A stretch of 64,000 nucleotides of DNA, taken from contig NW_019217786.1 of assembly GCF_002571385.2 (NCBI RefSeq), positions 1,051,676 through 1,115,675 of the forward strand, written 5' to 3'. This DNA comes from Stylophora pistillata (taxonomy: Eukaryota). Positions 3,401 to 52,513 of the stretch are shown here, in pieces. Position numbers and translations under genes: made by a program. The notes under the pieces are model-generated. The model was given only the letters and a program-made list of their open reading frames with translations. It ran no database searches and was not told the origin of the DNA. Position 1 is the first letter of the stretch, and each line of letters starts with the position of its first letter.

Positions 3401-6400
3401 CACCCTTTCTCTCTCAATAATGGTAAACATTTGAAGAATCCCGTTAATTTTGATACATCGTCACCTACCTGGAGATTGTTAACCGGGGAAGTTGTGATCT
3501 GAGGAGTATTTTTCTTATGCAACATCAAATTTGCACGGCAAACCAGTGTTTCATATCGAACGCGTTAATTGGAGCTCTTTGATTTAACCCTTCAACCTCG
3601 GAGAGTCACTGGCCTCCTATTTCTCTTTATAGTATCATCTCAGGGAATCAAGTGCAAAGCTCATGAGAATAAAGGAAATGATCACCAATTTAAGAAGCTC
3701 CTAATTCTCAAACAAATTTTACTAATCAGTATCAGAGGAAATGTTAAAAGAACAGTGTGGAGAACATGAATACTTGTGTTAGGGTTCAAAGAGTAAAGTT
3801 AATCCTCGGAAAAGTTCCTCGAATTATGTTTGCTCTTTCTCTTCCTCCCAATCGCACCTCTTATAAGCGATACTTTGGAAAGTTTTGTTAAGTGGTCGCT
3901 CTGTTTTTTCATCCTGTGACAGGAAATACAAGAAAGCATCAAGAACCGCGAGCCTCAGCTGAACCTAATCAGGAAACAGAGCGGTGAATTCGTTCATCGC
4001 GGCCGTCCCATCATGGAGCCTTACAAGCGTCTACTGGACAGAAGGTGGGATGACCTGTCGGCCAGGATAAGCCAGCTGGAGCACGACTTGGATGAGGCCA
4101 AAAGGACGGCTGCAGAAGCCAGAGCTAAAGGAGGTCGAGTTGAAACAGAGATTATCGTCACGGTGAGGAAATTGTCCCTTTTTGTGTTACTATTCTTCAA
4201 GGAGCTACGTGAAATGCGAACCTTAGAGCTAAAGCTTCAGTTCTAAGCCTCCTGTAATCGCTGTTAGTAAAATCTTTTGCATCAATAACCATCATCTTTG
4301 GTTTTTTGAGTTAGTTCTCCCACTTTTGTCCTTTTTGCTCTATCAAACTGGTACCTTACGGTCCTCTCAGTTGAAGTTACCGAAATGAATTTTTAACCCT
4401 GGTTGCCCATCTGAATTTTGTTTTTCACAGAAAATAATTCAAAGTATCTCGACAAGACTCCTCAAAAACTACTGGTTAAAAAATGAGTTTGTGAATTGCT
4501 TTTACAAAGTTCACAATTTAAACGAAATGTATGAAAGAAAAAGTATCGATGTAACCCTTCGATCATGTCTTGTTTTGTTCAGGAACGTAAGACAGTGTGT
4601 TCTCCTTCCGGAGGATTTATTAATGAATATCTATCAAGAGAAGAAAGAAGTGAAACTGACACGGGACTGCCCATCACCACCATCACCACTCACAGGAGCT
4701 ACAAAACAAACTCGGCTCCAGGTGAGACTTTGTAGCTTTTGAAAAGATTAAACGAGATCTCGGAGAAAACTCGTTGCGTTTTACGTGTTTTAACGTAAGA
4801 TCAAATCGTGGAAGAAGTTATTCATTCCTACACGCGTGGGATAAAGAGGAAGGCTGAGTTACCACGAGGAGTCCAACCTCAGACCGTCATTGAGCCGCAG
4901 AGAACTCTCAATGAAGTCGACCATTACACTGGACTCACATGCGACAAGCGCCGTGCTTGCTAATGTGATCAACAAGATCGAAAGCGTGATGTGTCTATAA
5001 AAGGAAAAACAGATAAAGTAGTACAGCATTGAGTCACGAACTGTGAAGGTTTGGGGTTCAAATGCTGTTGGGTGACCAAGGTTTTCTTTGATGTTTCATC
5101 AAGCATCGTCAGATCCTTGGTGAAGGATAGGTGGTAATCTAGAGTGGGTGTAATTTACAACCAGTAAAGCAGTATCCAGTTAGTAATAGCAAGCTTTTTA
5201 CTACCAGCTACATTTTGTCTTCTTTCAGGGCATTTTGTGGATGATGACTTCCAGAGGCGTTTAGATCAGATTCTTTTGGATATCAAAGGTTTGGAAGGTC
5301 TTATTCTTGACATTCAATCCCCCAAGAAATCATCCGAGAAAGAAGTCAACGAGAAAATCAAGGTAAGACTAGAAATCATTCCTCTACAAGAATATTTGCC
5401 TACAAAAGCCCACGTTTGATCTTAAATCGTACATGAATCGAGAGTTTTGAGGCAATTTTTTATTCAGGCTCTTATTGAAGTTTTGGTTAAAGAAGTTGAA
5501 ACCTTAAAAAGCCCTCGGCGAACCTCTGTTAAACCTTTGAAAACTCCCGGAGACCTATATGTGTGTCGGTGCTTGATAAACGCCTTGCGAATCTATTTTT
5601 CAGGTTGCCGAAATTCAAGTTGACAATCTTCAGCCGCGCGTGGAGCACCTGTTGAAGGAGAGCAAAACCTATGCTAACAGAGAGGGGGCACGGGGAGATC
5701 ACATCCACCAGTCGTTGCTTGATTTGTCCAGTCGATGGGTGAAGGCGTGCGATGAAGTAGAGAAGCAGAAGAAAGCTGTGCGTATTGTGCCAAACTGGTA
5801 TCAGTTCAGAAGCAACTTGGATGACATTGATGCGTGGCTCAGAAGGATGGAGCAAGAGAAAGAATTAACTGTGAAGGTAAGGACTGGGTCGATTGGTCTT
5901 CCGAAGCCGTGCTCCGGTGTTTTGAAAGGCCACGAAGAATAACCGGGGGTTACTGGGAGAGAACAGTCTTGTGAAGGCGCCAATCTTTGTTTGTTTTTTT
6001 CGTTTAATCGTTTTGCGACAGAGGAGATTGGATAGACAGAGACCATAAAATTCTAGTTTGGTACTGAAGGTTTATTGACATTTGCTGATGGAAATAAAGC
6101 AATGAAAAGAAAAGAATGGAATGCATTGAAAATTGTTGACTGAATAGCCCATTTCCGAATTACCCTTGGCCTCATTTTCAAAACGAGTCCTGGTGCTCAC
6201 CTTTCATATGATAATAAGTTTTCATTCACATGCAAATTAAACTCATTTTCATAAGAATGGTTGAGCACCAGGCCTCGTTTTGAAAATGAGGCCAAGGGTA
6301 ACTCGGAACTGGGCTATTAAGGCGAGGTTTTTCAAGATAAACAAATTATGACTTGCTCCAGTAATAAATGGATTGTTTTCGTTCCTATTTCTTTAAAAGC

Positions 6401-8841
6401 CGGAAGAAATCGAGGAGCAACAAGCCAAATACGAGATGGTGTTTAAGAATATTGAGGAACTGGACAGACAGGGAGTCCAGATACTGACTCCCCGCGAGAT
6501 TGAGCGATTGAGGAAGAGATTTAGGGACATTCATACCAAGTTTACGCAGTACCACAGGCCAGCTGGGGACGGTGAGTCCAACATCTTACTAACCCTTTAT
6601 CTGCCGAGATCTGCTTAGCAATTCTCCCTGCTAACTGCCTTCAGGGTCATTTTTTCTGAACCCTTTAATCGCAAACGAGTTTTGCGAATTTTCCGGCATT
6701 AATTCGTGCCTACATTTTGCCTTTTTTTAATTTATTTTTTATTTTTATTTTCAGCCACTTCTTACCGCATCACAATTCACACTGGTGACGTAAGGGATGC
6801 TGGTACGCAGTCTAACGTGTCTGTGATGTTGTTCGGTGATAAAGGAAAGTCGCCGAAACTTCGCTTGGACAAATCTGAGACATACAATACTAAGTTCTGT
6901 CGCGATCAGCTTGATATATTCACCGTTTATAACATTCCACACCTCGGCGATTTGCACAAGGTCCAAGTTTGGCACGATAGAACTGGACCCAAGCCAGAAT
7001 GGTTTGTGAAGGGATTTTACGTCGAGGACAGATCAACCAGAAAGGTTTACTTTTTCAATTGCAACTCATGGATTGGTCGAGATGCTGACATGCAAGACAT
7101 CAAGTGTGAAGGTTACACTCTACCAGAAGGTAAAATTAAAGCTATACAATAATGCTCTCATTGAATCGTCGTTGCTTTGGAAACAAAGCTTAGTGTCTTA
7201 AAAATCAATGGCAACAGTTTCTTATTCGAGTGGCCTATGGTTTTGTTCCGTAGCTTAAATATCAAATTGCCTCATCAACTCTTCAAAACTTTTTGATAGT
7301 AAACGAGTTCTTCTACCAAATCTTCGTCAGTGAAGAAAATCTTACTAAGGGCATCCTATAAACAAATAACGTGTCGTTGAACCAATGTTCATAACATTTT
7401 ACAACTTGAACAGTGCAATGGTTGAATTCAAACATTTTACAACTTGAACAGTGCAATGGTTGAATTCAAACACAAAACTGCAACTCGAGGATTATAATTC
7501 GTTATAGATCTACGAACATTTACCATGCCAAGGATTTAAGAGTTGAAATAAAAAGCTAGAAACTTACGTGAGAGTTTCAACGCCAGAAAAGGTTTGCGTT
7601 GGTTTATTAATTGTGCATTCATTAAATTTGCTTTATCAATTGACCGTCAAGATGGTGTGAAGAGAAGTTCAACCAGATGTTTTCATTTGGATTAATTTTG
7701 AACAATGTTTGCTTTGTTATGTTAAACTCGTTGTATTTTCTACTACATTGCCGCGTTGTCGGCGAGCGTACTTTCATTTTCTCGCATTGGTACTGTTCAA
7801 TATTTTTCGAAATTATAACCTTAGAAAGTGTCGAGAGAGCAGTTTTGCTTTCAACTTTCAACTGTTTGGAAAAGGGAAGTATATGTACTTGCCAACCACA
7901 ACTGTTTATGAAAATCGTTTGATTGTGAAAGTTGCTGGCTTTACGGAGTCTGCCATTGGTCGCAGCTGGGCGACCAGATCTTCGAAATTCGTAATGAATA
8001 ATTTTCATTTGGATTGTTGAACTTTAAAACACACTGCTCTGCAGGGCGGTTTTGTTCGATTAATTACGAAAGTCTCGTAATGACTGCTTTGGTTTTTCCA
8101 ACCTGTTTTGATTGATGGTAAGTGGCCGGGTTAAATAGTTAGTCGCGCCGAAGGAATGATATGATTTTAAGAAGATTAATGTTCTATTTTTCTGTGTCCG
8201 TAGCCGAAAGTATTTTCATAGATTAGGCAGCACAAAAAAAAAGAGTGAAATTTATTTCATCAAACGAAACTCAAAAGTGGCAAATTTTGGGAGTCGAACT
8301 ATTAATTGATTTGTTCAGATCATTACACCATGACAAAAATACTGGTACAACAGTTTTTTTTTTCGTCCTTCTATGTATTTTGATAGCTGTTGACACATTC
8401 TTGTTCAACAGAAGGCGAAGATATTATGACTAAGGCGTCACTAGCGCGAGTCCGCTGGCAAGTAACCCTTGTGCAGCATGAGCCTGCTTTGACTCCCGGG
8501 TGGAAGTTGGTGGAAGACATCAGGAAACTGTCAGATGAAGTCCATGAAGTGGAGCTGCTGCTGGAATCTCCTGAGCTACAGAAAGCAGACTTTGAAGACT
8601 TCTCCAAACAGGAGGACAAATTGAAGGTAAGGTGACCAAGAGAGGAGTTGCGTGATGAAGGTTAGGTGACCCAGCTAGGTGTTGCGTTACATGTCACACA
8701 ACACATTTGGTATCATTGTCAGTATCTGAACAACTACGCATCTACCCCTCCCCTGACCCAGAGTTAACCCTAACTTGTTATCAGTTGACAGATGTCGGGT
8801 CAGGGGAGGGGAGGGGGATAGACAGTTGCTCAGCGCGCGTC

Positions 8842-8873
<32 letters not shown>

Positions 8874-8893
8874 TCCGCGCCTCGTTGGCTATA

Positions 8894-8958
<65 letters not shown>

Positions 8959-9051
8959 ACAAATCTTACCAAATCTTAAATTCTTTAGCTCCCTTTTAAT
9001 TTTAAGCTGACGCGTACGCTTACCATATTTGTAGATTATGGTATATTGGCC

Positions 9052-9114
<63 letters not shown>

Positions 9115-9266
9115 GAATAATGCCTTTTATCCCATATTTCTCTGATGAGAGGACTGAGTTAAAGATTGAAATGTGAAGTTCATGAAAATTGTGCAGTCAA
9201 AACTTTTGTTCTATACAGGAGTTGTAACTTAAGAAAAAGGAAAGTTCTTCTGCATTCGCTTTCTGC

Positions 9267-9306
<40 letters not shown>

Positions 9307-12300
9307 GTTGTTTTCTTTTCACAGCTAATAAGCGAGAAACTGGAGAATTTTGAGCCACGTGCAACTGAAGTTCTCTCTCGAAGTGAAACCGTTCAGTCCG
9401 CCTGCAGTGAAAAGGAATACGATGCTGTGAAGAGAGCCGCCAGCAAGTTCAGACTACAATGGAATAACCTTCATCAGGTACGGGATACGCGTTGCCAACT
9501 CAAATTCAATATTCTACTGTTTATGAAATGGTACTGCGAGGGTAGATAACATGAAAATATGGAGCCAATTGGACTGCAGCCTGTGCACTAGTCGTCTTGG
9601 TTTTTTTAGCCAAGCGAGAGAAGATGCTTGAACAAACAGGAGTCGGGTAAAGATGTGGGGGTTATGGGGTCTAGAAAGAAAGTGCAGGAGGAAAGGAAGA
9701 GAAAGATAATCGGCTGATACGCAGGCTAAATTGGCTTGTCAAATTACTAATCAATTAAGGTATTGCTTTCATAACCAAATTAATTTACTGATTTTCTTTT
9801 CGCTCAGGATTATAAGGCGCGGTCGCTTCGCTGGGAGAAAGCAGTTGCAGTGTGGAGACAGTTCCACTGCGATCTTAAAGACGTGACATCTTGGATGACA
9901 CACGCGGAGAAGGTTCTTAGTGAGACATCCGGGGAAGTTGAATTTAACGCCGCTAAAAAAGAACAGAAGGTGATGTGCCGCTTTAAAAGGAAAAAAAAAA
10001 TCGAATGTTTGTATGATATTGAGCATAACAAGGCGAAGTCATTTTGTTGTCATTTTTACGTTTTCCATCCACATTTATTCAATCTTTTTCGGTTCGGCGG
10101 TACCTACGTAATTGCTTTGGTTTGTAGTTGAGACTGTGTTTCAAGCGCTACAGAAGTGTGTTTGACATGCGGTTGAATGTGTTGGAGGTGCATTCGAGAA
10201 CCATTTCACCGCGTCCAAAGGCATGTCAGCATTTCACTGCTCAAAGTTATATGAACTTTGCTCGGCTCAGTTGTTTGCGTTGAAAAAATTCATGTAATTG
10301 CAGTCGTAACTGTTGCAATATCTTTTTGTCTTTAGGGTTTGGAAGATGGTATCGCCCGACATCAGAGCACAGTCAATGCCATGAATACCGCTGGTCAGGA
10401 GATTATCAGTAAATCGACAACTGTGGAGGCTGATATGCTCCGGGACAAACTCACCACACAAAACAGGCGCTGGGAATCCATCTGCAATCAAGTAGCTAAC
10501 AGAAGAGACAGGTTATTAAGCGTTTAAAAAAATTCTTCCGTGTGTTACTCACGAGGATTTGAAGTTTAATCTGAAACGAATATCTAATAATAGATATGAC
10601 CTGAACCGCATGCGATTGAGTGTCCAGCAGCAGTATTCGATGGCGAGCTTCCACGATAAAAAGTCCTGTTATGTACATGAATTTGTTTCATATCCCTTTG
10701 GAAATTGGATCTCCATCTCCATCATCATGCTATCAACTTCTTCGTGTTTTTAGATTTATCCTTGTTAGGGCTGTCGGGCTTTTTAATTAATTGAATTTTT
10801 TTCTTCACTTACCATAGATTTAAAGAGGAAGCCATGCAGATTGAAGAGTTTTTGGAGGAAAGTAGAGAAATGCTGCAGTGGATGGACGAAGCAGATGCTG
10901 AATTGCAAACTAGGGATCCGTCACCAGCTGATGAGGATGGACTGGTGGAATTGATTGAAAAAATCAAAGTGAGTTAGTTTTCATTCTGTGGAAGAAAGCC
11001 GTGCTTTTGGCTGATCACAGTACTTTAGAATGAGACGAGACTGTGGTGATATGAACCCCTTTCCTTTTCCTTTTCAATTTAATTCGTTTAGCAAGGTGTT
11101 TTTATTTTCAGCCGTTTTTGTTCTCGTAACACAACACAGGAGGGAGAGTGTGTGCGTGAAAAAGAATCCATTCTTTGAGAGACTGAAGACTAAATCCTCC
11201 TCAACTGGTGTATTTTTAAACAGTGATGTGTTGGTTTTTTACAGGGAGTTCATAAAGAACAAAACGACAGAGAAGATACAAAGAACAGCATTCAACAGAC
11301 GGCAAATAGACTTCTGGTTAAGCCAGCTATCTCTAAACCCAACTCGGAGACCATCAGAGCGAGGCTGGACATCCTTCTTACTCGTTGGGACATTCTACGC
11401 GCAGATATCGCCACGCGCACGCGCGGAGTGGAGTCCAAGCTGAGACGCGTGTCAGAGTTCCTTGGTGATCTAGAAGAGCTTAGTTCATGGGCCTCTACGA
11501 CAATAAAACTGTGGGAGAAGGGAGAAAGTGTGGAAGTCGTTGATATCAATCCTAAGGTTTGTTGCGACTTCATCTGAAGAGAGGAAAAGGACGGTTTTAG
11601 ACTCTGACACCAAAATATCTCGATTTAGGAAGAGTTCTTTTGCTGTTTTGGGTCGATGTGTCTGATTATCAAGTAATTTGATAATTGATAAAACAATAAT
11701 CATTATTTTACGGTCAAGGCATGTCCCACCCTATAAAACACAACAAATCATTGTCACTAATACAATTAATTCTCACCGGAGAGACTTTAAGTTTTTGAAA
11801 AATTATGTTGGAGTGAAGAAGAAAACTTTGATGTCAGCGCAAGACTCAAGTAGAGAGGTACTCTAGTTTTTCGCTAATGCAAAAAATTAAGTGGTTCAGG
11901 ATTCAACATAGAAACGCGAGGACGTTTATTTTCCGTACCGGGACGCTGTTCTTTATTTTTTAGCTTTATGTGTTTATTTTTTTTCGCAGACTATTCAAGA
12001 GTCAATGAAGTCTCGTCAACCGAAGCTTGACGCAGTAAACGAAAACATGGCGCGCTACAGACGTGAAAGTAAACTTGATGGAAACCAGGTCCCAAAGTCT
12101 CTGGAGGTTAAAGTCAAAGAACTTAATTATAACTGGAGTCGAATTGCTTCACTCACCGCTAACATGTTCGCTCGCCTTCGCTCGCCCCCTAGAGTTCTCG
12201 AGGAAACAGTTGTCAAGGCGGATCAACCGTCAGTTCACACTGGCATCCCGCTGATTACAGAGGGTAAGCTGAAATTGTTTTTAGGAATTCCTTCCTTCTG

Positions 12301-18300: not shown

Positions 18301-21300
18301 CCCATCGCATCAGCAAGCAATACAGGTTCATATTTCACAATTAGTCTTGCACTCAGTGTTGACTTAAATTAAATACGTATCAAATCGTAAAATATCCAGG
18401 ATCTTTGTAACTTTGTGGCAAAATGGTAAGTGCTAAACACTTTATGAAGGTTATTGGACGCAGTTGTTTAGCAGACAGTTTAGCAGTTGGTAACTTAAGT
18501 TGAAATTTCATTCTGATAATTAGTGGTACTGTAATGAATTTATGGTTGTTTTTCATGGAGGTTACTGGTGCGAAGCTGTCGTTCATTGCTATAATCTGTC
18601 ATTGGAGCAATTCGTATTTGTTCTGAGCTAAGCGGCTGATCAATTTTTTCCCTTCGCCTCGGTGAGTGATGCGTCGTTTTGTGGTCGTCAAAAAATCACA
18701 TAGAAATTTATCTCTACGCATAACAGGAAACGTGAATGGATCTTGACCTCCGCGCACAGTTTAGCCCTCTTTTCGAGGTTAAATGTTGCAGTCATTTAGC
18801 GTAAATTGTCCCGTAAATTGGTTCATTTTTTACCCTTAAGTTTTCACGCACTTAAGTTTACGACCAGTTCCCGGGACGAACATTTTATCCGTGTAGTTTG
18901 TATTGAGAAGACAATAACATTTCAGGAATTTCCCACACTTAACGAATTTCGACCCGTATTAATGGCAATCCGATCACAATCTCATGGAAGCTGGGCTGGT
19001 CAGTGAAGAAGGAAACGCTTAGTCACCTTCTTTCGTCAACAACAAGCCAAAAAAAAGAAACTAAGAATGATTCGCCGGTTTAGTGACGTTTTCGATATTA
19101 TTAGCTGAAAGCAAGAATTGTTGGGAACCTTTCCTATGCGGTTTTGAACAATGATCCAGTATTTAACACTCACTTTCACACGGCTCAACTGTAATTGGAC
19201 ACTAAACTCCATTAATATGTTGTATAAGATGTGTACTGGAGAAAAATTTAACACTTGTTTTGGTATTTAATTCTTATGCTTTTGCTCTTATACAAAATAG
19301 TAAGAAGTCGTGGATTTGTTTCTACCGCTGAAACAGCCGTGCGTTTGTCCGCCATCGTTTCGTTAATTGATTTATCTCCATTATGCACATGTTGAGTTAA
19401 CCTATTAATTTCAAATTTGATTCTTTTTTTTTGCAAATACCACGTAAAGTTGTATGCCAAGTTCATTTTTTTCAGAGTCAATATAGGTTAAATATTTACA
19501 CACGGAACTCGAAGACCTTGGTCACGCAATTTTATTTAGATTCGTCGCGTAGAATTTTGCATCGAAAATGAATTTTTGAAGTACTACCTCTACTAACAGA
19601 AGAATTGATAACCTGTACTGATTTTAAATGGAAAAAGGATCATTAGTTGAGTTTCAGAGAAGTGAAACCCATCTCATGAACATCATAGGATTTCCTTTTG
19701 TAACGGAAAATAATGTTGAGTCAATTTGTTCAAGTGTTATTGATGCTTGATCGCAACAACACGGAAACAATATGCGAGAACCGAATTGATATGATATCTC
19801 TTGAAGATCTTGTTTTTTTAATTAAAAAGAGCATCTCTTTTTTAAAATGCTCAAAGTGGGTAACCCGCCAACTCCTAAGATCTGATTTTTTATTCTCCCC
19901 TCTAGCTGCTAGACATTTCCTTGTAAAAAAAAAAAAAAAGAAAAAATATATGAACTTCATATATTCTTTGTATCTGATTTATCATCACGGGTTTATTACG
20001 AATCAACTTAACGGCCTGCTCCCAGTTGGCTTGTTAGCTCAATTGTTAGAGCGCTGCACTAGTATCGCAGAGGTCAGTGGTTCGAATCCCGTACAGGCCT
20101 GATTTTTTTCAGGTCTGATTTTCGCTATTGCATAAATAGCGCTCTCTACTGCGAGGATCGTGCATCATACGTATTTCCTTGTAAGTTAATTATAAGAAGT
20201 TGGTGTGAGATCAAGACATCAACTTCTGCCTGATAAGTTTGGGTATTCGTATTACTTGGTTGCTGGATAATGTGTGGAAGTTTTAGGGAGTGGTTACATG
20301 ATAATCACTTGACTAAAAAGCAATTTGATCATTGGTAACTAATCAACATTTGAATCATTTCCTGGCGGTTCCCGTTACTTTTGGGAAAGTTCCCAGTTGA
20401 ATTTAGTTGTTTCTACAATACGCGTGATTTGTATTCCCTGTCTGCTGTCGGGAAGAGTAAAACTCTTCCATTATTTGTCTTAATTTGGATATATCAACAA
20501 AGTTGAAATGGTAAATTGGCCACCGTAATGATTACAAAAGCTGACGTTTCGAGCGTTAGCCCTTCGTCGGAGCGAATAGAGGAATTGTGGGTTGTGTGTG
20601 CTTTTAAAGGCAGAAAATGGAGCTACGTTATTGGTGGGTGCATGGCAACGAGAAAAACAAGAGTAAATTAGTGGAATGAAAAGCGTTCATTGATCCCTGT
20701 GGGATTGAGACTGCCGGTTTGAAAGATGAGCTTTTGTTCAAGATTTTTACGGCTTTCCGTGCCACCTAAGTGCAAGGAAAGACCGCAGATTGCCATATGT
20801 TGCTTAGAATGATTAGGTAAATTAAAATGTCTAGCGACTGGTTTAGATGTGTCCTTGTCATTCCTTTCCACGTCTCGAAGGTGTTCTCGGAATCGGTCAC
20901 CTAGTCTTCTGCCCGTTTCGCCGATGTATATCTTTTTGCAATAAGTGCAAGTTATGCAATAGATTACATTAGCAGAGGTGCACGTGAAGTATTTGTCTTC
21001 TCTTTTTTTTTTTTTGCATAATCTAAAAGTAGCAACTAAAACCCGCTCTGAACCTAAGATAGCCTAACTCTTGTTTACACAAGAAATTCCGCTTTGATGT
21101 ACACGCTTGCGCTTTAAAAATGAAAATCGTATTATCCGCCTACTTATCAAGTTATCATCCTGTGGATTTTTTGGGTCTATATTCAAAGGAGATTTATTGC
21201 AAGGTTTTTATTCAACTTTTTTAGATAAGCAACTACTTTTGTTTGCTCAAATTACGGGTTAAAGTACTTGTGAAACTGAAGTACATGTGCTGATAAAACT

Positions 21301-24300: not shown

Positions 24301-27300
24301 CTACTAGTCGTAAGTTGATCTTCACTTGTTTTCTGTCTTGAGTTTTGAATGTTTTTCAAGTTCCTATTTTATAATTTTCCCATTTATCTCGTTTAAGGGG
24401 GCTATTTTCCCCGCATAATAGTTGTAGACAGAACAGAACTTTTCCTTTATCGATCCGTAAATAACATTAAAGGAAAATACTCTGAATTCTTTTCGAAACT
24501 AGGTAAGCTTATTGTTTTTGCTATACACGTGAAGATAAATGGCAAGGGCTTAAAATATTGTTTTCAAGTTTGATTTAACAACCATTGATATATGAAATAT
24601 ATTGCATTTCAAAATGTGGATAAACATTGGTTGTGCTCTGATAAACAGACCTGAGGTATTTATTAATTCGACAATTTGTTCTCTAAACAGTGGACCTGGT
24701 GACCCTCAACAATGTGATATCAGCCTTTGAGCAGCACCATCTGAAACAATCTACCAACGATTCTTTAATCGGTGTCCCGGATATGGTCAAGGTATTGACG
24801 ACTATATATGAGAACATTGAGGTGCCAGCGGATTTATCGATGACCAGCAATGAGTTCTGTGTTGACCTGACGCTTAACTGGCTTCTTAACGTCTATGACA
24901 GGTAACTATTTCAATTACAGTTTGTTGGCATGGTTACATTGCTTAACTTAGCGACTGAAATGGCTTTAGGCCGAGTATCATCGTTTTAGTTCGAGTAATG
25001 TTAGCCGACTTCTAATGCCAAGACAGTTTTACATGCTCCTCGAGACATAATTACCTCTCTGGAGCACCAGTTAGGGTTCTCCTCTTTCCCCCCCCCCCCA
25101 TCGCCGACGAGTCGAGGGGGTAGGGAGGAGAGAGGAGGGGAGGCAGCAAGTATTGAAGCCAATTTTTCCAGAGTTATATAGGGTTTAAAGTATATTCGTC
25201 TGTGAAATTTTAATTGCATTTTAAGTGTGTTTCCTTCTCAGAACATCGTTCTGCACAAGGGCATTTAAAGTTAAGTCTGTTTCCTTCTTTCAGCGGGCGA
25301 GTCGGAAAAATTCGTGTTCTATCATTCAAAATTGGTCTGGTGACAATGGCTAGAGCTCATTTAGAAGACAAATACAAATGTAAGAATTTGAAGGTTTGAT
25401 TTTGTGTTATGCTTAAATATTTTCTTGCGTGGTCCAGGTTAAAAAAAAAGTTCGATGTCTCTTTCAGATTTATACCGGCTTGTTACGGACGAAAAAGGCT
25501 TAATGGACCACAAGCAACTTGGATTGCTCTTACATGACTCGTTACAGGTGAATTGAAGCTCTGTTTTCGTTACTGAATGTTGTACAGCCTGACATCGAGA
25601 CAAAAACAGGGCTGTTACTCGTTAAATACGGGCATTTAATTGGGAACAAGACATTCTCCTGGTCTAATTTTTTTTATCAGAACCTTATATCAAGATATGG
25701 TGTCTTAACCTGATAGATCTACTTAATGTCAAGATTTTATTCCCATTTGCTTTGCAGATTCCCCGTCAACTGGGTGAGATCGCCGCTTTTGGTGGCAGTA
25801 ACATTGAACCGAGTGTGAGAAGCTGTTTCTCGAAGGTAGGCCACTTCAGAGGTTCCAAACTCAAAGTTTTTTAAATTAATCATTTGGAATCATAAAATTG
25901 TCGCAAAATCTTAACATCAGGTCATAAACACTGCGAGATTAAGACTCTGCGTAGCTTGTAACGCTGAACCTGACGGTGTGAAAATGGTGATATCATTATC
26001 GTGACGAATTCCCCTCTAAATACATTGGTGTGGCAGAACGTTCCTTTAGGATTGGAACAGGAAACACGCCCCATCCTATCGGCCGAGCAGATGCACCACT
26101 AAAACAATTCGCCTCTTGTTGTTTTATTTTACTCTGAGCTCTCATCTCCTTCCTTGTGATATTTCGATCCCTCTCTTCTGATTAGCATCGGGGAACATTT
26201 TAGCCATTTTGTTTTACCAGACCCAGTCGAAATACGCTGATTGAAATGATCTCTTCCTCCTGAGTGCCATTCCATAACTACTCCAGTGAACGCTCTAAAT
26301 CTGATATGTCGGTCGAGCTAAGTTTAATTCGGCAAGCACCACATCTTTGGTCTCTTGCTTCTATGAATTAGTTAATTTGGTTAGGCAGGGGACGTTAAAG
26401 AACCCACTCACGAGATTACTGTGATGTGGTCTGACCTGCTTACTGGGAATTTGGGGAAGGGGGCATCTTCAAATAAGTTTCCTTCGATTGTTTGTAAACT
26501 GCTGATGCAGTCCGGCCAAAGTCCCCCGAAAAGTGTCGTGATGCGCATTTGATCATATCCACATGTTAGTTTGCGCAATATAAATATTAAATTATTATTA
26601 TTACTATTATTATTATTAATAATATTATTATTATTATTGGTCATAAGTTCAAACAGAATATCAGTCAATAGTCTAGAACTGATTTGATCTTTGCTGTCTG
26701 TTGTCTGCAGGCAGGAGAAAAAAAGACCATCGACTGTGCAGAGTTTATGACGTGGTTATCAGAGGAACCTCAGTCTATTGTTTGGCTCCCAACACTTCAC
26801 AGACTGGCCGCGTCAGAGGCTGGTAAGCACTTCACTTCAAATTTGCTTTTGTGATCTAGTATTTCTTTATTACATTCATACCTTTGGTAATTTTGCTGAA
26901 AGAAGTTAAGCGATTACTGTTTTAAAGACGCAAAAGCTTCTGGTTTTCTCTGTCATTCACGTTCTTTTTTTTCTTTTTTCCCCTCTTATAGTGAAACACA
27001 AAGCAAAGTGCAGCATTTGTAAAGAGTACCCTATTGTTGGGTTTAGGTGGGTGAATTTTCTTCAAGGTCACCCTTCTGTTTCTTTATTTGGACTCAGTGC
27101 TTTCTTTAGTGCATTACAAAGATATCCTCTTAAAATGTTTTGTATTTGTTGCAGGTTCCGTTGTCTAAAGTGCTTCAACTACGATTTATGTCAGGTATTA
27201 ACCATTGAATGTGGAGAGTATTGCTTTTCTAGCTGTTGGCAGCAAATGAACCTCTCTAGTTTCCTAACCATCATATTTGTCATTCCTCATCAGAGCTGCT

Positions 27301-29015
27301 TCTGGTCGGGCCGAGTCTCCCATGATCATCGTCTCACTCACCCAATGCATCAGTACTGTCTGTCGGTAAGTAGGTGTTCGTAGTTTGATTGACATTTTAC
27401 TATATTAAGAGCTAAAAGTTAAGTGTTGCAACTGATCTTAGGTAAAAGCAATTACCCTAGATCTAATTATACTATTGTTATTGTTTTTTTTTTATCAAGA
27501 CCACCTCTGGTGAGGATGTACTAGATTTCTTGGCCATGGTTAGAAACAAATTCAAGAAAAGGCGATACAAGAACAAACCGCCACGAAAACTTGGTTATTT
27601 ACCGATTCAGACGGTAATGGAAGGAGGAAATCTCGAGACGTAAGTTTACAAAATTTTGTTTTGATAAACCCCGCAGTAAATAGAAAAATTAGATATTTTT
27701 GTTGGCCAGTCAAAATTATCCCTTGTATTCCAAGAGGAATGGAGAAGAGACTTTATGTTCGTCTTCTGTATTTTCCTCATTGTTGCATACCTTTAGTTTG
27801 TTTCTTCTTCTCCCTCTCTTTTAATAATCACTTTCCTTTCTTTTATTTCTCTTTTGCAGACCACCCATGCCGACTCCTCAACAAAATGTTAATCATGAAG
27901 TACACAACAGACTAGGCATGTTTGCACACAGGTGCGTGAATTATCCACATCCACTTTCTTCACGAAGTGAAGTCACAAAGGGATTGTATACAGGGAGACC
28001 ATCCCCCACTTCCTTTCCTCGTTCCGCATTCGGAAAGCAGGAGCTTTATCAGACTTTTTTAAGCAGACCAAAACAAGGATACTAGGCAGTATAAATCCTT
28101 TACCCCCTGACGTCAGTATGCATATTCTCCATACTGTTCAGTCTGCATATTCTCCATACTGTTCTCTATACATTTTCTAAGGTGCTGACTGGGAGAATTT
28201 ATTCAACGTTTATGAGATTCCTTAGTTGGTGTTCGTTTCTTCAATTCTCGTGACCTTAATGTGTTACTCAGGGGGGGTGATATAGTAAGGGGAAATGAGA
28301 TTTTAGTCACTTGTAGGGGTTAAAGAGTTGTACCTTAACTTTCTCCTTTACTTGCAGGTTGGCCGAAGCAGAATCAGAAGGAGGAAAATATAATCCACAC
28401 GATTTGTAAGTCTTGTAATGTAGAAGCACGACTTTTGCACGAGTTCTGTCTTTTTGCGTTAATACTCCCAAGAGATTTGGTTTTAATAAATCTGCTGATC
28501 TGCTTGGATTTGCCGTCCGGTGGTAGGAAATTCATGAGGAGTAAACTTGTATTGTTATTTTTCAGGGACGAAGAGCATCAGCTTATAGCACAGTACTGCC
28601 AAAGGTACAAGCTAATCCCGTTTTACCACAATCTGCCTTTTACACCACACCTTAAAGAAAACGGCATTACGCTGGAACGCTCCGATCATAAGCTGTTTGA
28701 ACTACACTGAATTTTGAAATCTTAACAGAAGAGTTTTCTCTTGGCAGCAAATTAAGATAAGATGGCTCCTTCGTTTCAGTTATTTTTTAAAAGTATTATT
28801 TAACAATTATTCCACGAGCGTTTGTTGGACATGAGATGACAGATAGCCAACGAGACGCGTAGCGCCAAGTTGGCTATAATCATCTCATATCCAACAAGCG
28901 CTCGTGGAATAATTGTTTTATTAAAAACATTAAATTCAATATTAAATATTACTAAATTTTTAGCTCCCTTTTAATTTTAAGATGACGCGAACGCTTACCA
29001 TATTTGTAGATTATA

Positions 29016-29046
<31 letters not shown>

Positions 29047-31461
29047 GAAAGTCTTGAATTTCATTATCCAATGATCCAGTTTTTAATGAAAATTATTACA
29101 CCAAGTTATTCCCATTGTAGCCCGTTTAAGTTGTTTTTTCTTCATTATATTAACGGTATTTTTTTTTCATCATTAACAGCCTCAAGAGTGACACAGCAGA
29201 GGCGGTAAGAAGTACATTGATATTTGACCTAATTTTAATTTTTTTAAGCTCTTGAAATTTGTTGCGATAACTTTTATTTATGTATTATAACAATTGCTCT
29301 TGTTTTTGTAGCCTAAAAGCCCAACTCAGATTGTAATGGCTTTGGATGCGGTTGAAAAAGAAGATCTTGAAACTGAGCTTCTTAAACTGGAAGAAGAAAA
29401 CAGGTTTGTGAACAATTTGTGATAATTTTTGAAAACGAGCTCGTTCTTTTTTTTTCCAAAATTCTTTATCGCCAAAAATGATTAACGAGTTTATTGCTTT
29501 CAATTTTTTTTTGTTTCCTTTGTTTTTCAAGGGACCTCCAAGAAGAATATGAACGGCTCAAGTCCATCAGAGATCAGTCTAGCCTCCCATCTGATAGCGA
29601 GCCCTCTCCGGGTGGACCTCAGAACAGAGATTCTGAGTTGCTTGCAGAAGCTAAACTTCTGCGTCAGCACAAAGGTCGCCTGGAGGCGAGAATGCAAGTG
29701 TTGGAGGACCACAACAGACAGCTAGAGGCGCAGTTGCAGCGACTTAGACAACTTCTTGATCAGGTGCAGGAAAATGATTGTTACTGGACCCAAACCAGCA
29801 ATTTCCCAACATTTCTCCTCAATATCTCATACTTATGTTAATTAATTTCTCTTTTAGCCCGGCCAAGACAAACAGAGCGGGGCCCAGTCCTCCGAACGAA
29901 CCACTCCGTCTTCCTCCGTCAGCTCGCTAGGAGACGGTCCGTATTCCCCGGTCAAGTCAGGTCGATCGGGAAAATCCCGCGGGAATGATAGCGATTCCGA
30001 ATCGGAACCCGGTGGGACGAACTCAGGACCTCTGAAAAATGGTTTTGCTAGTAAGGGAAGTGAGGATCCAGCTCTAAAGGAAGTCATGAGTCAAATAAGT
30101 TCTTCTTTTCCTCGTGATCAGAAAAGTGAGTGAGGATCCAGGCACGGTAAAGCACCATTTGGTTTGTTGTTTGTTGTTTATTTCAGTGACTAATGCTGTT
30201 AACTCTTGTGTAGTGTCTGCTGAAGCCTAACCAGTGGAATCTAACCCTGCATGACTGTTGACTCTTCTGGTAAGAGATCTTAAGCTACCGAATTTAACAA
30301 CGAAACTCGGCGCAATAAACACAAAATCAAAATAAATCAAAATGCCCCTGAAACAGCCCGCAGCGAAAAAGGGCATTGTGGTCCTCGCTTAGATGTTCAT
30401 GCAGTAACATGACTTCTCTGGTTAAATGCGAGCTTAGATTTCTTCGATTTACTACTCTTTTTTTAGACACAAGGCTAAAAAGTTTGTGTTTTTGCCCGAA
30501 AAGGTCGTGGTTTGGGACGCAACGAAAAATTCCTCAAAGTCACAAGGAGGAACGTTGCGTGACGAGCCGTTTCGGCAGGCCTGTCACCAAATTATTTCAC
30601 TTCTGTATTCACCCGCACTAGCTATGAAACGTCATGCACACTTGCACTGAAGCTGACTTGATACTAATATTTATCGTTCTAACTCGTAACACTGAAAGAT
30701 AAATTTGGAAGTAATAGTATCACAGAGTGCTATTTGTACAATTGCATCAATTATTTTCAGTTATGATGTACTATTTGTTCCACAATTTGTAAAAGAGGAA
30801 GTCTGCTAATCTACTACCAGGTTTAGAACGCAGACCTATTCGTTGAAGAAGGGAACTACTTTACAGAAATACATCAATTTATGTGCTTGGACAAGTAAAT
30901 TAAATTGATCATGCACTTGGCACGTCACGTCTATCAGAGCAATTTTCACTGCTGCCGGTGTCGAACGTTATCCCAGATTGATTTGGTTCTGTTTTATTTC
31001 GCTCCTTTTTGGACCAAAAAACGCATCTCACTTTCTCGACCAATTAGTTTCAAAACTAAAACCAAGCGCGACTTGGTTGCTCCTGTTTTGCCGCGCTTTA
31101 AGCAGTTTGTTTGTTTTTACTTCGAGTTCTCATTAGTTTCTGGTGAACTTTTGTTGCTATGATTTGTTTGATGGGATTGCTTTGGGTTTTTTTTTTTTTT
31201 TTTACGACATTCAATCGGAAAGTGCTGTTGAAATGAGGCAACGTTTCATTGAACGACGAAGTTTAGAAACCTAGTCTTTTTCGTTTCGTTGAAATGCTTT
31301 AAGTCCAGCCATTTGTAGCCTTAATGAGAAGTGATCATTCATCCATTTTTTTTTTTTTTTTAGGTGCAGATCCCGTTGGACATTTGTTTGCTACTGCAAA
31401 AGATGTTAATAAAGCTGTGGAATCTTTAGTTCAAGTTATGACGGATGATGAAGCTGAGTAG
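438..31461 (+). CDS. DMD: Dystrophin/utrophin orthologue, 3' portion (5' end outside window), 45 exons
   Basis: Exons join in frame through GT-AG introns: 438-587, 1903-2220, 3923-4162, 4583-4721, 5229-5362, 5604-5876, 6400-6571, 6755-7129, 8412-8626, 9325-9477, 9808-9969, 10336-10511, 10818-10968, 11245-11556, 11990-12263, 12494-12636, 12917-13033, 13216-13431, 13795-13949, 15602-15788, 16426-16562, 16679-16871, 17241-17474, 22563-22697, 23213-23438, 23704-23764, 23992-24053, 24235-24309, 24691-24901, 25294-25379, 25468-25547, 25758-25835, 26711-26822, 26992-27046, 27155-27194, 27294-27365, 27500-27639, 27860-27931, 28358-28405, 28566-28604, 29180-29204, 29312-29403, 29532-29763, 29858-30125, 31364-31461 (TAG). 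Diagnostic motifs: spectrin repeats; WW ([30 protein letters not shown]); [13 protein letters not shown]; [24 protein letters not shown]; ZZ finger; [38 protein letters not shown]. Confidence 0.97.
1010..1208. mobile_element. Small MITE-like element
   Basis: Imperfect terminal inverted repeats (TAGCTTGCGATCAGACGTTCCT ... AGGAACGCCTGGTAGCAGGTTA) with TA ends. Confidence 0.55.
3584..3801. mobile_element. ~200-bp TTAACCCT-ended dispersed repeat (piggyBac-like MITE); relatives at ~19860-20310, ~28094-28330 and 54499-54693
   Basis: TTAACCCT start, degenerate AGGGTT..TTAA end, and similar interiors among the copies. Confidence 0.55.
6143..6318. mobile_element. Palindromic MITE
   Basis: Long inverted arms: AATAGCCCATTTCCGAATTACCCTTGGCCTCATTTTCAAAACGAG ... 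CTCGTTTTGAAAATGAGGCCAAGGGTAACTCGGAACTGGGCTATT. Confidence 0.85.
6755..7129 (+). CDS. Dystrophin exon encoding a complete PLAT/LH2 domain (LOXHD1/polycystin-type)
   Basis: Translates as [30 protein letters not shown]...[12 protein letters not shown]...[22 protein letters not shown]...[10 protein letters not shown]. 375 nt, pyrimidine-rich CAG acceptor, AG|GTAAAA donor, phase 1-1. Confidence 0.9.
7393..7468. repeat. Perfect 38-bp tandem duplication
   Basis: AACATTTTACAACTTGAACAGTGCAATGGTTGAATTCA occurs twice in tandem. Confidence 0.95.
8832..9122. mobile_element. Hairpin-containing dispersed repeat, copy 1
   Basis: Contains the stem-loop GGATATGAGATGAT..TAGCCAACGAGGCGC..GCGCCTCGTTGGCTATAATCATCTCATATCC and is highly similar to 28795-29090. 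Confidence 0.85.
17700..17850. mobile_element. Degenerate MITE with GGATAGCG/CGCTATCC subrepeats
   Basis: Inverted ends CCGGTTGTTCAA ... TTGAACGACGG and internal GATAGCG repeats. Confidence 0.5.
19927..20172 (+). mobile_element. tRNA-like-containing retro-element monomer with 12-bp TSD
   Basis: TSD ATTTCCTTGTAA at 19915-19926 and 20173-20184. Internal cloverleaf with A/B boxes; nearly identical to the units at 46132-46757. Confidence 0.88.
20482..20989 (-). mobile_element. 5'-truncated Penelope-like element: GIY-YIG endonuclease C-terminus plus 3' repeat
   Basis: Frame 20988-20668 reads [40 protein letters not shown]...PVARHFN...[15 protein letters not shown]. 10-bp TSD TATTTGTCTT at 20472-20481 and 20990-20999. 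Confidence 0.92.
20540..20573 (-). ncRNA. Minimal hammerhead ribozyme motif (CCGACGA core variant)
   Basis: Minus strand reads GCT-CCGACGA-AGGGC-TAAC-GCTC-GAAA-CG-TC-AGC, the minimal type I fold known from Penelope-like repeats. Confidence 0.7.
26590..26638. repeat. Imperfect (ATT)n microsatellite
   Basis: Interrupted ATT run. Confidence 0.9.
28795..29090. mobile_element. Hairpin-containing dispersed repeat, copy 2
   Basis: Same family and orientation as 8832-9122, with longer inverted arms (AACAATTATTCCACGAGCG...CGCTCGTGGAATAATTGTT). Confidence 0.85.
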
Positions 31462-35427: not shown

Positions 35428-38400
35428 ATGACGATTTCGACGCGGACATTTGTAAGGTTTCTAGCCCTGACTGCCGCAACCTTTGCTGTCAAAGGTAAAT
35501 GAATTTGAAAGAAGGAAATCTCTTTGTAATCTTACTTTAGTTTTAATTTTTGGTTGATGTCGATAATACTTCGATTAAGTATTTGCCCGGGTTCTGTTCC
35601 GGCCTCTCGTGTTTTGTTGCATTCTGGCTAGTTTTTGCAGCTGTGTTGTCGAAATTTCAGACGTTTAGATATAAGTTTGTGAGAAAGATCTGTTTATGAA
35701 CATACTCATGTCAGAATAACAAGACATTCATCAAACTTGAAATATTTTCTGCTTTTGCTCATCATTCGAAAGGTGGCCAATAGGCTTGCGTGGTTACGAT
35801 TCCTGTTTTTGGTATCCATTGCAACAGAAATCAGAAAACCGACGCATTTGTATCAGAACGCATCGGCTATGCAAGACGCATTTGCGACACCATTCGGTAA
35901 CTGATTTCCGAATGAAAAGAGAACGTAGATTTTTTTCCGATCATTTGAATATACTTCCCTCTTCCAGCTTCCCATTCAGTCGCCAGATGTGATTTATATT
36001 TCATTTTCCACCGAAGGTCATGAAACGCCATTTATCCGAAGGAGATTTTAGCCTATCCGTCACTGTTGGGTTATATTTCATTTGAAATTTGCATTTCTTG
36101 TTGAGTCAATTGCAATCAATATAATGTCAAACGAGGAACCAAACTTTGACAAGCTATCTCATTTCTGAAAAATAATGTAGTTGCCCATTCAGTACGGTTT
36201 AGAATATTACTTCCATTTTGTCCACATTTTCTTTTTTATTTCATATCCGGATAATTGTGAAGTGAAATTACTAAGAGATACTTGACAAATTCAATGACTA
36301 AGTTAAGTTTCATCAGTAATCAAGAGATTTAAGAAATTTTGAATAATCTTCTCGTTTTCTGAGATGATTTGTCGGTAGTTATGTATTTTTGAAGAAAACT
36401 TGATTGATCATAAATTAGGAATGGTAAACACACATTCATAGAATGTTTCCCTTCTGGGACTGCATTGCGAGGATTTCAAATCCAACTCGACTGAGGAAAA
36501 ACAAATCGTGATTTGAAAAGCTGTAAACTAACTACAGACGTTTCTAATTCCCACATTTATTAGTAAACATGCAATCCACGATTTAGCTTGCTGGTACAGG
36601 CCTATAGGTGTGTATTGAATCACTAATGTCTTAGAAATGAAGCTTATCGTTCTAAAAATCTTTTAACAACATTGAATTCAAAGCCAGCCTCTAAAAGGGC
36701 CTTGTCTATGTAAAGCTTTACATGAATCGTTGTCAGCTGACCCTGTGATTTGTTCAAGAAATACATGCTGACTGCTAAAGTCGACGAGGAATGAAAGAAA
36801 ACTTTGTTCGTGCGATAGATAAAACAATAAAATTCTTGCTTGCGAGCTAATTGTCTGTAAATATGATGAAATCTATTGTGATATATTTGTAGTAGGAAGC
36901 CTTTTTGTGTCTTTGTATTTACCTACAACATAGATAAGCCAATAGATGTTTTGCTTTACTTGTATTACACGGCTGTAGATGTCTCACGCACCACAAACAT
37001 TTTCTTAGACAGGCTGATCATTTTTCGAATTCTTCCTTCGAAATCTGACCGACGAGAGTAAAGGTGATCGTGAGAAGGTTCATGGATGTTAGTATGTACC
37101 CTATGCCAATTGCAAATCCAGTCCTAGGTCTGCCTGGTCAAACCATTTCTGTTTCGAAACAAAGCGGGTGCAGGCGACATACAGCATTTCCGAATAGAAA
37201 TGACAGGACAAAATGTAGAGGCGGATCTAAAGAATACTGGGCAACGCGGAGTCGTTATATAAGTGTAATAAGTTCAGTCTTTCTCGTCTGGAAGGTCTGT
37301 TGTTGAAGGCCAAAAAACTCTTAGATTAGTTCTTATCAAATCATTTTCATAAAGTAAAGAAGTGCTTTACTTTTATTTCTCACAAACGTTGAACAAAGGA
37401 ACGAAACTTTTCACGAAGTAGGTTTGAGCTCCACACCGTTCGTTTGCATCTCCATCTGATCTGCCACTGAGTTCTGCCACTTACAATGGCTGTTAACTAA
37501 GCTGCGCTTCACAAGAGTGACTCATACTAAAAGTCATGTCTTTACAGCAATTTTCGCATTTCTTCCAGGAATAAATGGGAGCTGGAACATTTCTTTGATG
37601 GAAAACGGGGAGGCAAAGCTGAGACAGAAATTATTCAAGACTGGTTACAATCCTGAACTACGTCCCGTTCTGAACAAAAGCAATAAAGTCACTGTCAAGC
37701 TCGGTGTCTCTTTACATCAAATCATTGATGTGGTAAATGATCTTTTTTGTCTATGTTCTTATGTTCTTATGAGGACACCACGTGGTTTTTGCAATTATGC
37801 CAGGTTTTATTTTCCATTGATTGAACAGCTTTTCACCACCTCTGAAAGGTAGTGATTTTGCAGAAGCCTCATCGAGAGAAGTAACAAATAAACTCGAAGA
37901 GGAAAACCTGAAAAATGATTTGGTTTTATCAACTGAGTTAATGATATGAATTTTCTGCCGTAAATAGTTTCTAAAGCTGGTATTTCGTTTCATTAGCCCT
38001 TAGTCAAAGCAAATGACAAGGGGCTATTGTTTGAAACGTCAGCTTTAAAAGGTCTTAATGGTGGTCAGTTTACATTATCAACTCATTTGATAAAACCAAA
38101 TTATCTTGTAGTACGGTAATTTGGTTATATCATGATGAACTAAGCTGAAATTGTATTAGGCCCCCGTAAAGAGTTAAAAAGCAAACGTATCGAGTGTTAG
38201 CCCTTCGTCAGAGCGTCTTCGTCCGCTCTGACGAAGAGCTAACACTCGAAACGTCAGCTTTTTAACTTTTTACGGGGGCCAATTGCAATTGACAATCTTA
38301 ACTTAGTTGATATAATCAAATTACCTTGTCACTCCCACCGACATAACACCACAGTTTCTAAAGAAACTTACCCCCCCCCCTTATCTTGTAGTACCCCCAC

Positions 38401-51182: not shown

Positions 51183-52513
51183 AATTTCTAACGTACAAGT
51201 AGCTGCTAGATACGGCTTAGCCCATATCATAACACATTTTCCAAAAATTATTCTCTAGCAAACTATTGCAAGACGTAAATGCATTTGATTTAGCGAGTAT
51301 TTTCCCTTAACACTAGGTATTCGAATATTACAGCTCGGAAACTTTTGAGCTTTTCAAAATTCTCCCCGTTCGCTTCTGATTCATTTTTATAAGGGAATTG
51401 AAAGGGTGCACAGACTAAGTGAGAATGCAGCTAGAATTAATTCAACCACTTCATTGAAACAAAGATGGATGTAGCTTCTAGCGATTTACTATAAAGAATA
51501 ACGAAATTCCATGTAAAATTGGTTGAGCTGCAGTCCTAAATTCAGACCGCTAATGATTTATCTTCCATTTCCATGGAATGATTGCAAACATCCTTGCTTT
51601 CTTTTATCTGAATTAATTTTAATTTTTACCAGAAACCATTTGTCGATAAATAACAGAAAGTATAAGTCATAGCAGTGACTTTCGTTAAATAAAACTGCCA
51701 GGCGGACCTTTTTGAACGAATTTCCTAAGTGGGAGTGAGGTAGCTATTGTGTTATAATGGTATGACCCTTGGGTTTTCTTTTTAAAAGGGCAGAGACACC
51801 TATTCTCTCTTTGCAACAGAACCGAATACGACATGGGGCTAGATTATATGTCATAACAAGGAAGAAGCCTATCAAAGAAAGGTCCGGTTCTTTCAGGCGG
51901 CCAGACAATTCTATCTGTATCTCCCGCCCCCTCCCCCCCCCTCCTTCCTTCGGTTCCCTATAACAAAGGGCCATATGGTCCTTCATCAAGGGGCCATATG
52001 GTTCTTCCTTCTCAAAACGGATATGGGTCCCGTCGACATAATGGTTAACACTCGTTAATAAAAAGTCCGATGTCTTTCCGTAAAGTTTACAAAATTTGAA
52101 TTAAAATGTTTTCTATATTATTGAAAATTATTTGTGATTTATGACGTTAATGATTTGCTCATGATTATAACAAGGCTATTTGTCTTCTGTACAATGTAAG
52201 TCCACGGACTACTATCTTACTGATAAACATATGTTCCACTAAAAGCATTTTTTATTCATCTTTCCTGGGTACCCATCCACCAGTTGTCTTTTCTAATGAT
52301 AATTGAATCATTTAAACCTAGACAAGATTCCTATTTTTTCTCTTTGAAACTTAACTATGCTTGAAAAATTTAACTCAACCTCCTGTTGACTCATTTGGTT
52401 GGTTCCCGCCTCTAATTTTAAATAATATCAAGTGTTACAAGACTAAGCAACATGATCTTAGCGGCATCGTCCCACGGTTCTCCTCCCTGAATCGCAAACT
52501 GCATTATTTACGT

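Follow-up and report, generated by a model that had tools for sequence, protein, structure and literature searches.

A PLAT domain inside the dystrophin rod of the coral Stylophora pistillata

PLAT/LH2 domains are binding modules for lipids, Ca2+ or partners, known from lipoxygenases, polycystin-1 and related proteins. In lipoxygenases the domain stands N-terminal to the catalytic domain and mediates Ca2+-dependent membrane targeting (the structure 2fnq carries the title 'calcium activation via a C2-like domain'), whereas in polycystin-1 and PKD1-like proteins it lies in a cytoplasmic loop of a membrane protein, and the cytoplasmic LOXHD1-like proteins carry tandem arrays of 10-24 PLAT repeats, with no spectrin, EF or ZZ domains. 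Dystrophin and utrophin of vertebrates are built differently, from a CH-CH pair, a spectrin rod, EF-hand_2, EF-hand_3, a ZZ zinc finger and a coiled coil, and the membrane association of the dystrophin rod is attributed to spectrin repeats R1-3 and R10-12, with no dedicated domain. Here we analysed a stretch of 64,000 nucleotides from the coral Stylophora pistillata (assembly GCF_002571385.2, contig NW_019217786.1, positions 1,051,676 to 1,115,675 of the forward strand; hereafter the window, in whose coordinates all positions are given unless stated otherwise), which contains much of a dystrophin gene on the plus strand. One exon of this gene, at 6755-7129, encodes a whole single PLAT domain, placed inside the soluble cytoskeletal rod.

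A 2023 review of dystrophin states that vertebrate repeats SR1-3 bind phospholipids, that SR10-12 are targeted to the sarcolemma, and that R16-17, right after the R15/R16 junction, dock alpha-syntrophin and nNOS; why the phospholipid contact of the rod is needed is, according to the same source, not known to anyone (PMC10293626). Its domain-wise alignment of human dystrophin with a representative species of each phylum, which describes conservation 'from corals to humans', contains no mention of PLAT (PMC10293626).

The PLAT exon comprises 375 nt and is open in one of the three forward frames. It begins at 6755 behind the 3' splice site ...ttttcag/CC ACT TCT TAC... and ends at the 5' splice site ...CCA GAA G/gtaaaa at 7129/7130, and the split codons at both ends place both introns in phase 1. 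The upstream GT..AG intron (6572-6754, plus strand) has a long polypyrimidine tract ahead of the exon and is missing from the RNA contigs described below, and the downstream GT..AG intron (7130-8411, plus strand) is removed by a joint recorded as 7127->8410 (cut +2) in two RNA contigs and in 45 and 4 raw reads. Pfam assigned the translation to PF01477 with an E value of 7.3e-23 and 81.9 bits (curated cut-off 23), covering profile positions 1-108 of 117. In the AlphaFold2 model, based on an alignment of five orthologues, the exon forms a beta-sandwich with nine strand elements (mean pLDDT 75.4, pTM 0.69), and a Foldseek search of this model against the PDB retrieved the N-terminal PLAT domains of lipoxygenases, including coral 8R-lipoxygenase, as the best structural matches (TM ~0.7, at a sequence identity of 18-25%), followed by Rab6IP1 and pancreatic lipases (TM 0.65-0.74 overall, E down to 5.5e-8). 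The closest solved structure by sequence is the PLAT domain of polycystin-1 (E 3.5e-15), yet it is only ~30-37% identical and is devoid of a conserved extra stretch (KSETY...) of the coral dystrophin domain. These results confirmed that exon 6755-7129 is real and encodes a PLAT domain, far above chance, as the initial annotation of the locus had proposed when it described a stop-free exon of exactly one such domain between two phase-1 introns and suggested the Pfam check reported here.

We then examined the transcripts. RNA from four studies, consisting of two assembled runs (contigs X1 and X2) and two raw-read runs (X24 and X21), was mapped to positions 4000-9990, with joints reported at 3 or more reads and a share of 10% or more, and with a T-rich repeat (6721-6756) and a second repeat (9260-9317) masked. 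The two RNA contigs, of 6.9 and 9.5 kb, span eight consecutive exons. The exon chain 4582-4718, 5226-5360, 5602-5873, 6757-7127 and 8410-8624 lies back to back in the record coordinates of both, to which X1 adds 6397-6571, 9323-9473 and 9804-9970, and X2 adds 4000-4161. In the X1 record (6871 nt), 6397-6571 occupies record positions 6137-6311, 6757-7127 occupies 5764-6134 and 8410-8624 occupies 5549-5763, so that the last adjoins the PLAT piece without a gap, and the two letters left between the first two pieces correspond to the masked 6755-6756. In the X2 record (9537 nt), 6757-7127 and 8410-8624 are again adjoining, while 6397-6571 is absent from the rows listed. The raw reads agree with the contigs: the GT..AG joint 7129->8412 was supported by 45 reads with 23 starts in X24 and by four reads in X21, and is the best-supported joint of the mapped interval. 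The joint 6571->6755 is missing from the joint table because 6721-6756 was masked, and 8624->9323 is missing because the repeat 9260-9317 was masked. All along the interval, first mates mapped to the minus strand, which is the pattern that a stranded library gives for RNA of the plus strand. In eight RNA runs, ~28-34% of the words sampled from 6300-8700 were present, close to the proportion of this segment that is exonic.

The same data bear on whether the exon is optional. The initial annotation had suggested that in-frame skipping makes the domain switchable, and had proposed a count of inclusion against skip junctions. In that count, the 45 and 4 reads of 7129->8412 face a skip joint 6571->8412 that was not listed in any of the four RNA data sets at the above thresholds. 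Depth per exonic base in X24 was ~35-46 on the PLAT exon and 24-57 on the other exons, and in X21 it was above that of the adjacent exons; both splice sites of the exon also look strong, with the polypyrimidine tract on one side and a GTAAAA donor on the other. The exon was included in four of four RNA runs, and the pairing of inclusion and skipping joints that marks a cassette exon was not found in them. The PLAT exon is thus spliced into the dystrophin transcript constitutively, or nearly so, in the sampled RNA, and the idea of switching found no support in the comparison, whereas the exon proved to be in frame with and joined to both of its neighbours in the transcript contigs and the raw reads. 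Some genomic gene calls (P0050, P0053, P0054 and similar) present the domain as stand-alone small PLAT proteins; these calls read on into introns and were rejected as separate proteins.

Two short high-copy repeats lie in dystrophin introns, at 6000-6400 and 8830-9120. On both of them the RNA word depth reaches thousands to tens of thousands, against ~200-300 on exons, and the reads there map to either strand and show numerous variant letters and loose ends. They look like transcribed dispersed repeats of a SINE- or MITE-like kind, outside the dystrophin mRNA.

The identity of the host gene was assessed exon by exon, with every exon queried separately in the sequence searches. Plus-strand exons run to ~30.1 kb of the window, and several of them gave Pfam Spectrin matches. 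Ahead of the PLAT domain, the mapped exons comprise a non-helical Ser/Thr/Pro-rich, hinge-like exon at 4582-4718 (RNA joints 4161->4582 and 4718->5226, with the frame taken from the phase of the next exon and from tblastn to L001, L004 and L009, three of the coral contigs described below), a spectrin-repeat exon of phase 1-1 at 5226-5360, supported by RNA joints and by the orthologous exon in other corals, a further spectrin-repeat exon at 5602-5873, with RNA joints and a weak Pfam Spectrin / Spectrin_SYNE1 match on 5580-5939, and the exon at 6397-6571, found among the RNA contig pieces, which holds the end of the R15-equivalent repeat and ends in phase 1 (...PAGD + G). Exon 4582-4718 had no Pfam match, and 5602-5873 no dystrophin match in the PDB. 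Behind the PLAT domain follow, all on the plus strand, the phase 1-1 exon 8412-8624, present in both RNA contigs and holding the rest of the R15/R16 linker and the start of the R16-equivalent repeat, the R16-equivalent spectrin-repeat exon 9323-9473, supported by RNA contig pieces and orthologues, and the exon 9804-9970 at the R16/R17-equivalent boundary, reached by the joint 9473->9804. Exon 4582-4718, ~230 residues ahead of the PLAT domain, shows a conservation of only 54-62% between corals; possibly it encodes a hinge that has no vertebrate counterpart at this position.

Further downstream on the same strand, the C-terminal region of a dystrophin can be read. It consists of a dystrophin-type EF-hand_2 exon at 24687-24902 (PF09068, E 3.6e-17), a dystrophin-type EF-hand_3 exon at 26672-26851 (PF09069, E 8.3e-12), a stretch with ZZ zinc-finger exons at 26910-27380 (PF00569, E 3.1e-7) and a C-terminal coiled-coil exon at 29482-29838, recognized from its translation and from weak generic coiled-coil Pfam matches. 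One rod exon also matches, secondarily, residues 3558-3596 of the full-length vertebrate dystrophin chain (PDB 9c3c chain D, here 9c3c_D), which shows the same C-terminal motif in the vertebrate chain. By eye, a WW-like motif can be discerned near 23.7 kb, on an exon fragment with no Pfam match. These C-terminal domains are linked to the PLAT exon by genomic position, the RNA mapping having covered 4000-9990. In the other direction, the upstream 60 kb of the same contig contains more spectrin exons, together with CH1 and CH2 exon fragments at G000:C3 ~1,030,600 and ~1,033,650, on the same strand and ~21 and ~17 kb ahead of the first window position. Their matches are to the CH1 and CH2 domains of alpha-actinin, utrophin and dystrophin (E 3e-4 each; Pfam CH E 0.002); a whole-genome CH-domain scan had missed these fragments, which came to light on inspection of the upstream sequence, and their tie to the transcript is likewise one of genomic position. 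By every feature that could be tested, the gene is a true dystrophin, sharing its general plan with vertebrate dystrophin (DMD; 9c3c chain D) and utrophin.

The place of the PLAT domain within the rod was determined against the vertebrate chain. Three rod exons match 9c3c_D in order: 6397-6570 found residues 1918-1968 as its best match in the PDB, weakly (E 2.9) and in the expected order, 8414-8623 found residues 1997-2038 (E 9.6e-4), and 9805-9969 found residues 2092-2132 (E 6.2e-5). The exons around the PLAT domain thus align in order to R15, R16 and R17, and in both proteins a non-helical break lies at R15/R16. Residues near 1970-2000 are presumably the R15/R16 boundary. Modelling of the human rod assigns to the R15-16 junction a 20-residue extra sequence that forms a long non-helical linker (PMC3162007). 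The vertebrate chain has ~28 residues between its matches to the exons on either side of the PLAT domain, which leaves no room for PLAT, whereas the coral protein has 4 + 27 linker residues and the 125-residue PLAT domain. The likeness of the flanking exons to human R15 and R16, on which the initial annotation had based its placement of the insert in the R15-R16 linker, was thus reproduced against the PDB chain. Accordingly, the data support a coral PLAT domain at the R15/R16 junction, as a clean one-exon difference from vertebrates.

We next compared the locus with other genomes. By exon-by-exon tblastn, the same exon order was found in nine other contigs (L001, L002, L004, L005, L006, L008, L009, L020 and L023). 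The PLAT domain is 90-91% identical in L006, L008 and L009, 88% in L004, 80% in L001 and 64% in L002, and the series of upstream spectrin exon, PLAT exon and downstream spectrin exon stands on one strand in L004, L001, L006, L008 and L009. Contig L002 begins at the PLAT exon and has the downstream exons in the same order, and the more distant group of L005, L020 and L023 (54-56% PLAT identity) keeps the order wherever the contig extends; L021, which encodes the same protein as L020, comes from SAMN08714533, a marine-biofilm metagenome. Relative to the flanking exons, the identity of the PLAT domain is equal or higher in the more distant contigs and roughly equal in the closest. Similarity to the orthologues ends exactly at both splice sites, and the adjacent intron 6572-6754 has no detectable similarity to its counterparts from other corals; the protein matches, obtained in a homologue search confined to proteins of 68-217 aa, are genomic gene calls that continue into introns. 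A metagenome scan with the domain returned only further corals at 90-91% identity and one unrelated PLAT. The PLAT domain is therefore present at the same place in the dystrophin of other corals and of a more distant clade.

The domain is also under strong purifying selection. Against five corals, dN/dS of the PLAT exon was 0.03-0.06 with dS >1, and the downstream exon gave the same result. Five aligned PLAT sequences, down to 56% identity, share ~60 invariant positions, including positions in surface loops, and the stretch of residues 39-53, with K39-Y43 and R49-D53 invariant, is conserved and is partly an insertion relative to polycystin-1. One candidate distant dystrophin PLAT, P0164 (39% identity), was rejected, since its locus L022 has several PLAT exons and no dystrophin exons.

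Two observations on individual relatives can be added here. In L002, the segments 2672-2818 and 2822-2995 correspond to exons 9323-9473 and 9804-9970 and are contiguous, the intervening intron being absent in this 64%-identity lineage. In another coral (ENA contig of ~1 Mb), the 79-aa open frame P0160 covers the last third of the PLAT exon only, at 90% identity, which could be due to an additional intron, a frameshift or a stop in that coral, or to an error of its assembly.

As to the source of the domain, the Stylophora pistillata genome has at least 98 PLAT matches. The dystrophin PLAT is single-copy, and the next best PLAT of the genome is 34-37% identical; these nearest paralogues carry their PLAT at the start of open frames of 370-600 residues without another Pfam match, and may be polycystin-1-like. 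Among the best 150 matches to representative proteins, multi-PLAT (LOXHD1-like) proteins are on top, at 26-37% identity per repeat, and none of the matches listed exceeds 41%, while the ESM Atlas returned only generic PLAT clusters. A donor gene with a closely related exon was identifiable neither among the genome paralogues (34-37%) nor among the matches listed (41% or less), and the event is too old for a donor to be named. The initial annotation had read the symmetric 1-1 phase as a mark of exon shuffling. The exon does hold one PLAT domain and a few residues between two phase-1 introns, which fits an exon insertion; the 1-1 phase is less distinctive than this annotation implied, since exons 5226-5360 and 8412-8624 nearby share it, and symmetry by itself is weak evidence here. 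Apart from the dystrophin gene, the genome shows a large PLAT expansion: in many contigs (for example C453, C401, C99, C98, C314, C459, C691, C48 and C92), dozens of PLAT domains stand at the start of intron-free frames of 370-600 residues, and PLAT exons also occur in several clusters that resemble multi-PLAT genes.

Taken together, a dystrophin with a constitutively expressed PLAT domain in its rod is nearly certain, and for its function we favour a lateral membrane attachment, modelled on the lipoxygenase domain. The domain would most likely have arrived as one phase 1-1 exon inserted into a phase-1 intron, at a junction tolerant of non-helical sequence, from which its beta-sandwich may project sideways from the rod. 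It could then anchor the mid-rod at the cytoplasmic side of the plasma membrane, through anionic lipids, possibly with Ca2+, or through a membrane protein. In that case it would give dystrophin a third point of attachment, located between the actin-binding domain at the N terminus and the dystroglycan-binding region at the C terminus, in parallel with the membrane-binding R1-3 and R10-12 of vertebrate dystrophin. This function, which rests on analogy, we judge to have an even chance of being correct, and the whole reading, with architecture and function blended, a probability of about 0.6. Several points weigh against it. On the side of function, the net charge of the domain, from a residue count of the translation, is near neutral, so that it is no obvious binder of anionic lipids; any lipoxygenase-type Ca2+ ligands or membrane-inserting residues in it are only putative; and the conserved, lineage-specific loop might just as well serve to contact a protein. 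The model is of moderate confidence (pLDDT 75), and its residues 41-48, which overlap the most conserved dystrophin-specific stretch 39-53, are below pLDDT 50. On the side of architecture, the joint 6571->6755 is drawn from the contiguous record coordinates of X1 and is not listed directly, a full-length gene model with spectrin, PLAT and ZZ was not seen among the best 150 representative proteins, which are swamped by multi-PLAT proteins, and, given four libraries and the joint threshold, a minor or tissue-specific skipped isoform is possible.

The neutral charge and the lineage-specific loop would suit a domain that docks a protein instead of a lipid, bringing to the mid-rod a specific membrane or cortical partner, for example a small GTPase effector, a channel or an enzyme. 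A chain of Rab6-interacting protein 1 from the solved RAB6-R6IP1 complex is among both the sequence and the fold matches of the domain, the invariant K39-Y43 and R49-D53, as partly an insertion against polycystin-1 PLAT, fit a lineage-specific interface, and the adjacent R16-17 is a partner-docking site in vertebrates (PMC10293626); however, a partner is neither known nor predicted, and we consider docking possible, though rather unlikely. A passive spacer or hinge, kept only to fold without disrupting the rod, would account for the position of the domain at the one mid-rod junction that has a long non-helical linker in humans (PMC3162007), and for the fact that vertebrates manage without it; but the dN/dS of 0.03-0.06 and the ~60 invariant positions exceed the needs of a spacer and equal the constraint on the flanking repeats, which makes this explanation very improbable. 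The splicing results speak to the two remaining explanations. A cassette that is included or skipped in frame, turning a membrane link on and off, would be allowed by the 375 nt and the 1-1 phase, since skipping keeps the frame, and the RNA examined comprised four libraries only; it is nevertheless very improbable in view of the missing 6571->8412 joint in four runs, the depth in the constitutive range and, in X21, above that of the neighbours, the presence of the exon in both assembled transcript contigs, the strong polypyrimidine tract and GTAAAA donor, and the 1-1 phase of neighbouring constitutive exons. Finally, all that speaks for a separate nested gene or an unexpressed relic is that genomic gene callers report the exon as a stand-alone open frame, but the stand-alone frames merely extend into the intron and the transcript contigs run through into dystrophin exons on both sides, and a nested or separate gene was ruled out on this ground, leaving next to no probability for this last explanation.

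Other elements of the window do not concern the PLAT exon. An open frame for a GIY-YIG nuclease lies in a dystrophin intron at 20671-21063 on the minus strand (Pfam E 4.9e-5), with a near-copy upstream of the dystrophin gene (L030 3073-3429, plus strand), and both look like fragments of a Penelope-like retroelement. Downstream of dystrophin are at least two genes for Cys-loop ligand-gated ion channels, at ~37400-41000 on the plus strand and ~49000-56700 on the minus strand (Neur_chan_LBD E 2e-15 and 5e-14; Neur_chan_memb E 4e-16).

What is new in this locus is the combination, dystrophin with PLAT, of two parts that are each of a known kind. No description of a dystrophin with a PLAT or LH2 domain, nor of PLAT with spectrin or in connection with Nematostella, was found in the searchable full-text literature, in line with the earlier expectation that the architecture had not been described, although annotated coral proteins in databases may well show it. 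Lineage-specific domain insertions are not rare, and the function of this one is presumed, but a PLAT domain in dystrophin is surprising to the dystrophin specialist. Accounts of the protein commonly treat its layout as unchanged since the ancestor of cnidarians and bilaterians, and the conserved PLAT domain of the anthozoan rod is an unexpected exception. An older history is also conceivable, in which PLAT dates back to the dystrophin of ancient cnidarians, or even of early metazoans, and the insertion at human R15/R16 marks the same site, as a scar of loss or as a permissive loop. We think this unlikely; if true, a lateral, possibly Ca2+-regulated membrane attachment in the middle of the rod would be ancestral to dystrophin, with lipid-binding spectrin repeats now used by vertebrates, and corals would offer a separable domain for testing why the rod must contact the membrane. 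Independently of that history, the finding highlights the R15/R16 junction as a site tolerant of inserted sequence, adjoining the R16-17 segment of micro-dystrophin designs, and the PLAT exon is a modular handle, one exon removable in frame, for testing the contact between rod and membrane. If the domain does bind the membrane, it would give independent evolutionary support to the view that lateral membrane attachment of the dystrophin rod matters.

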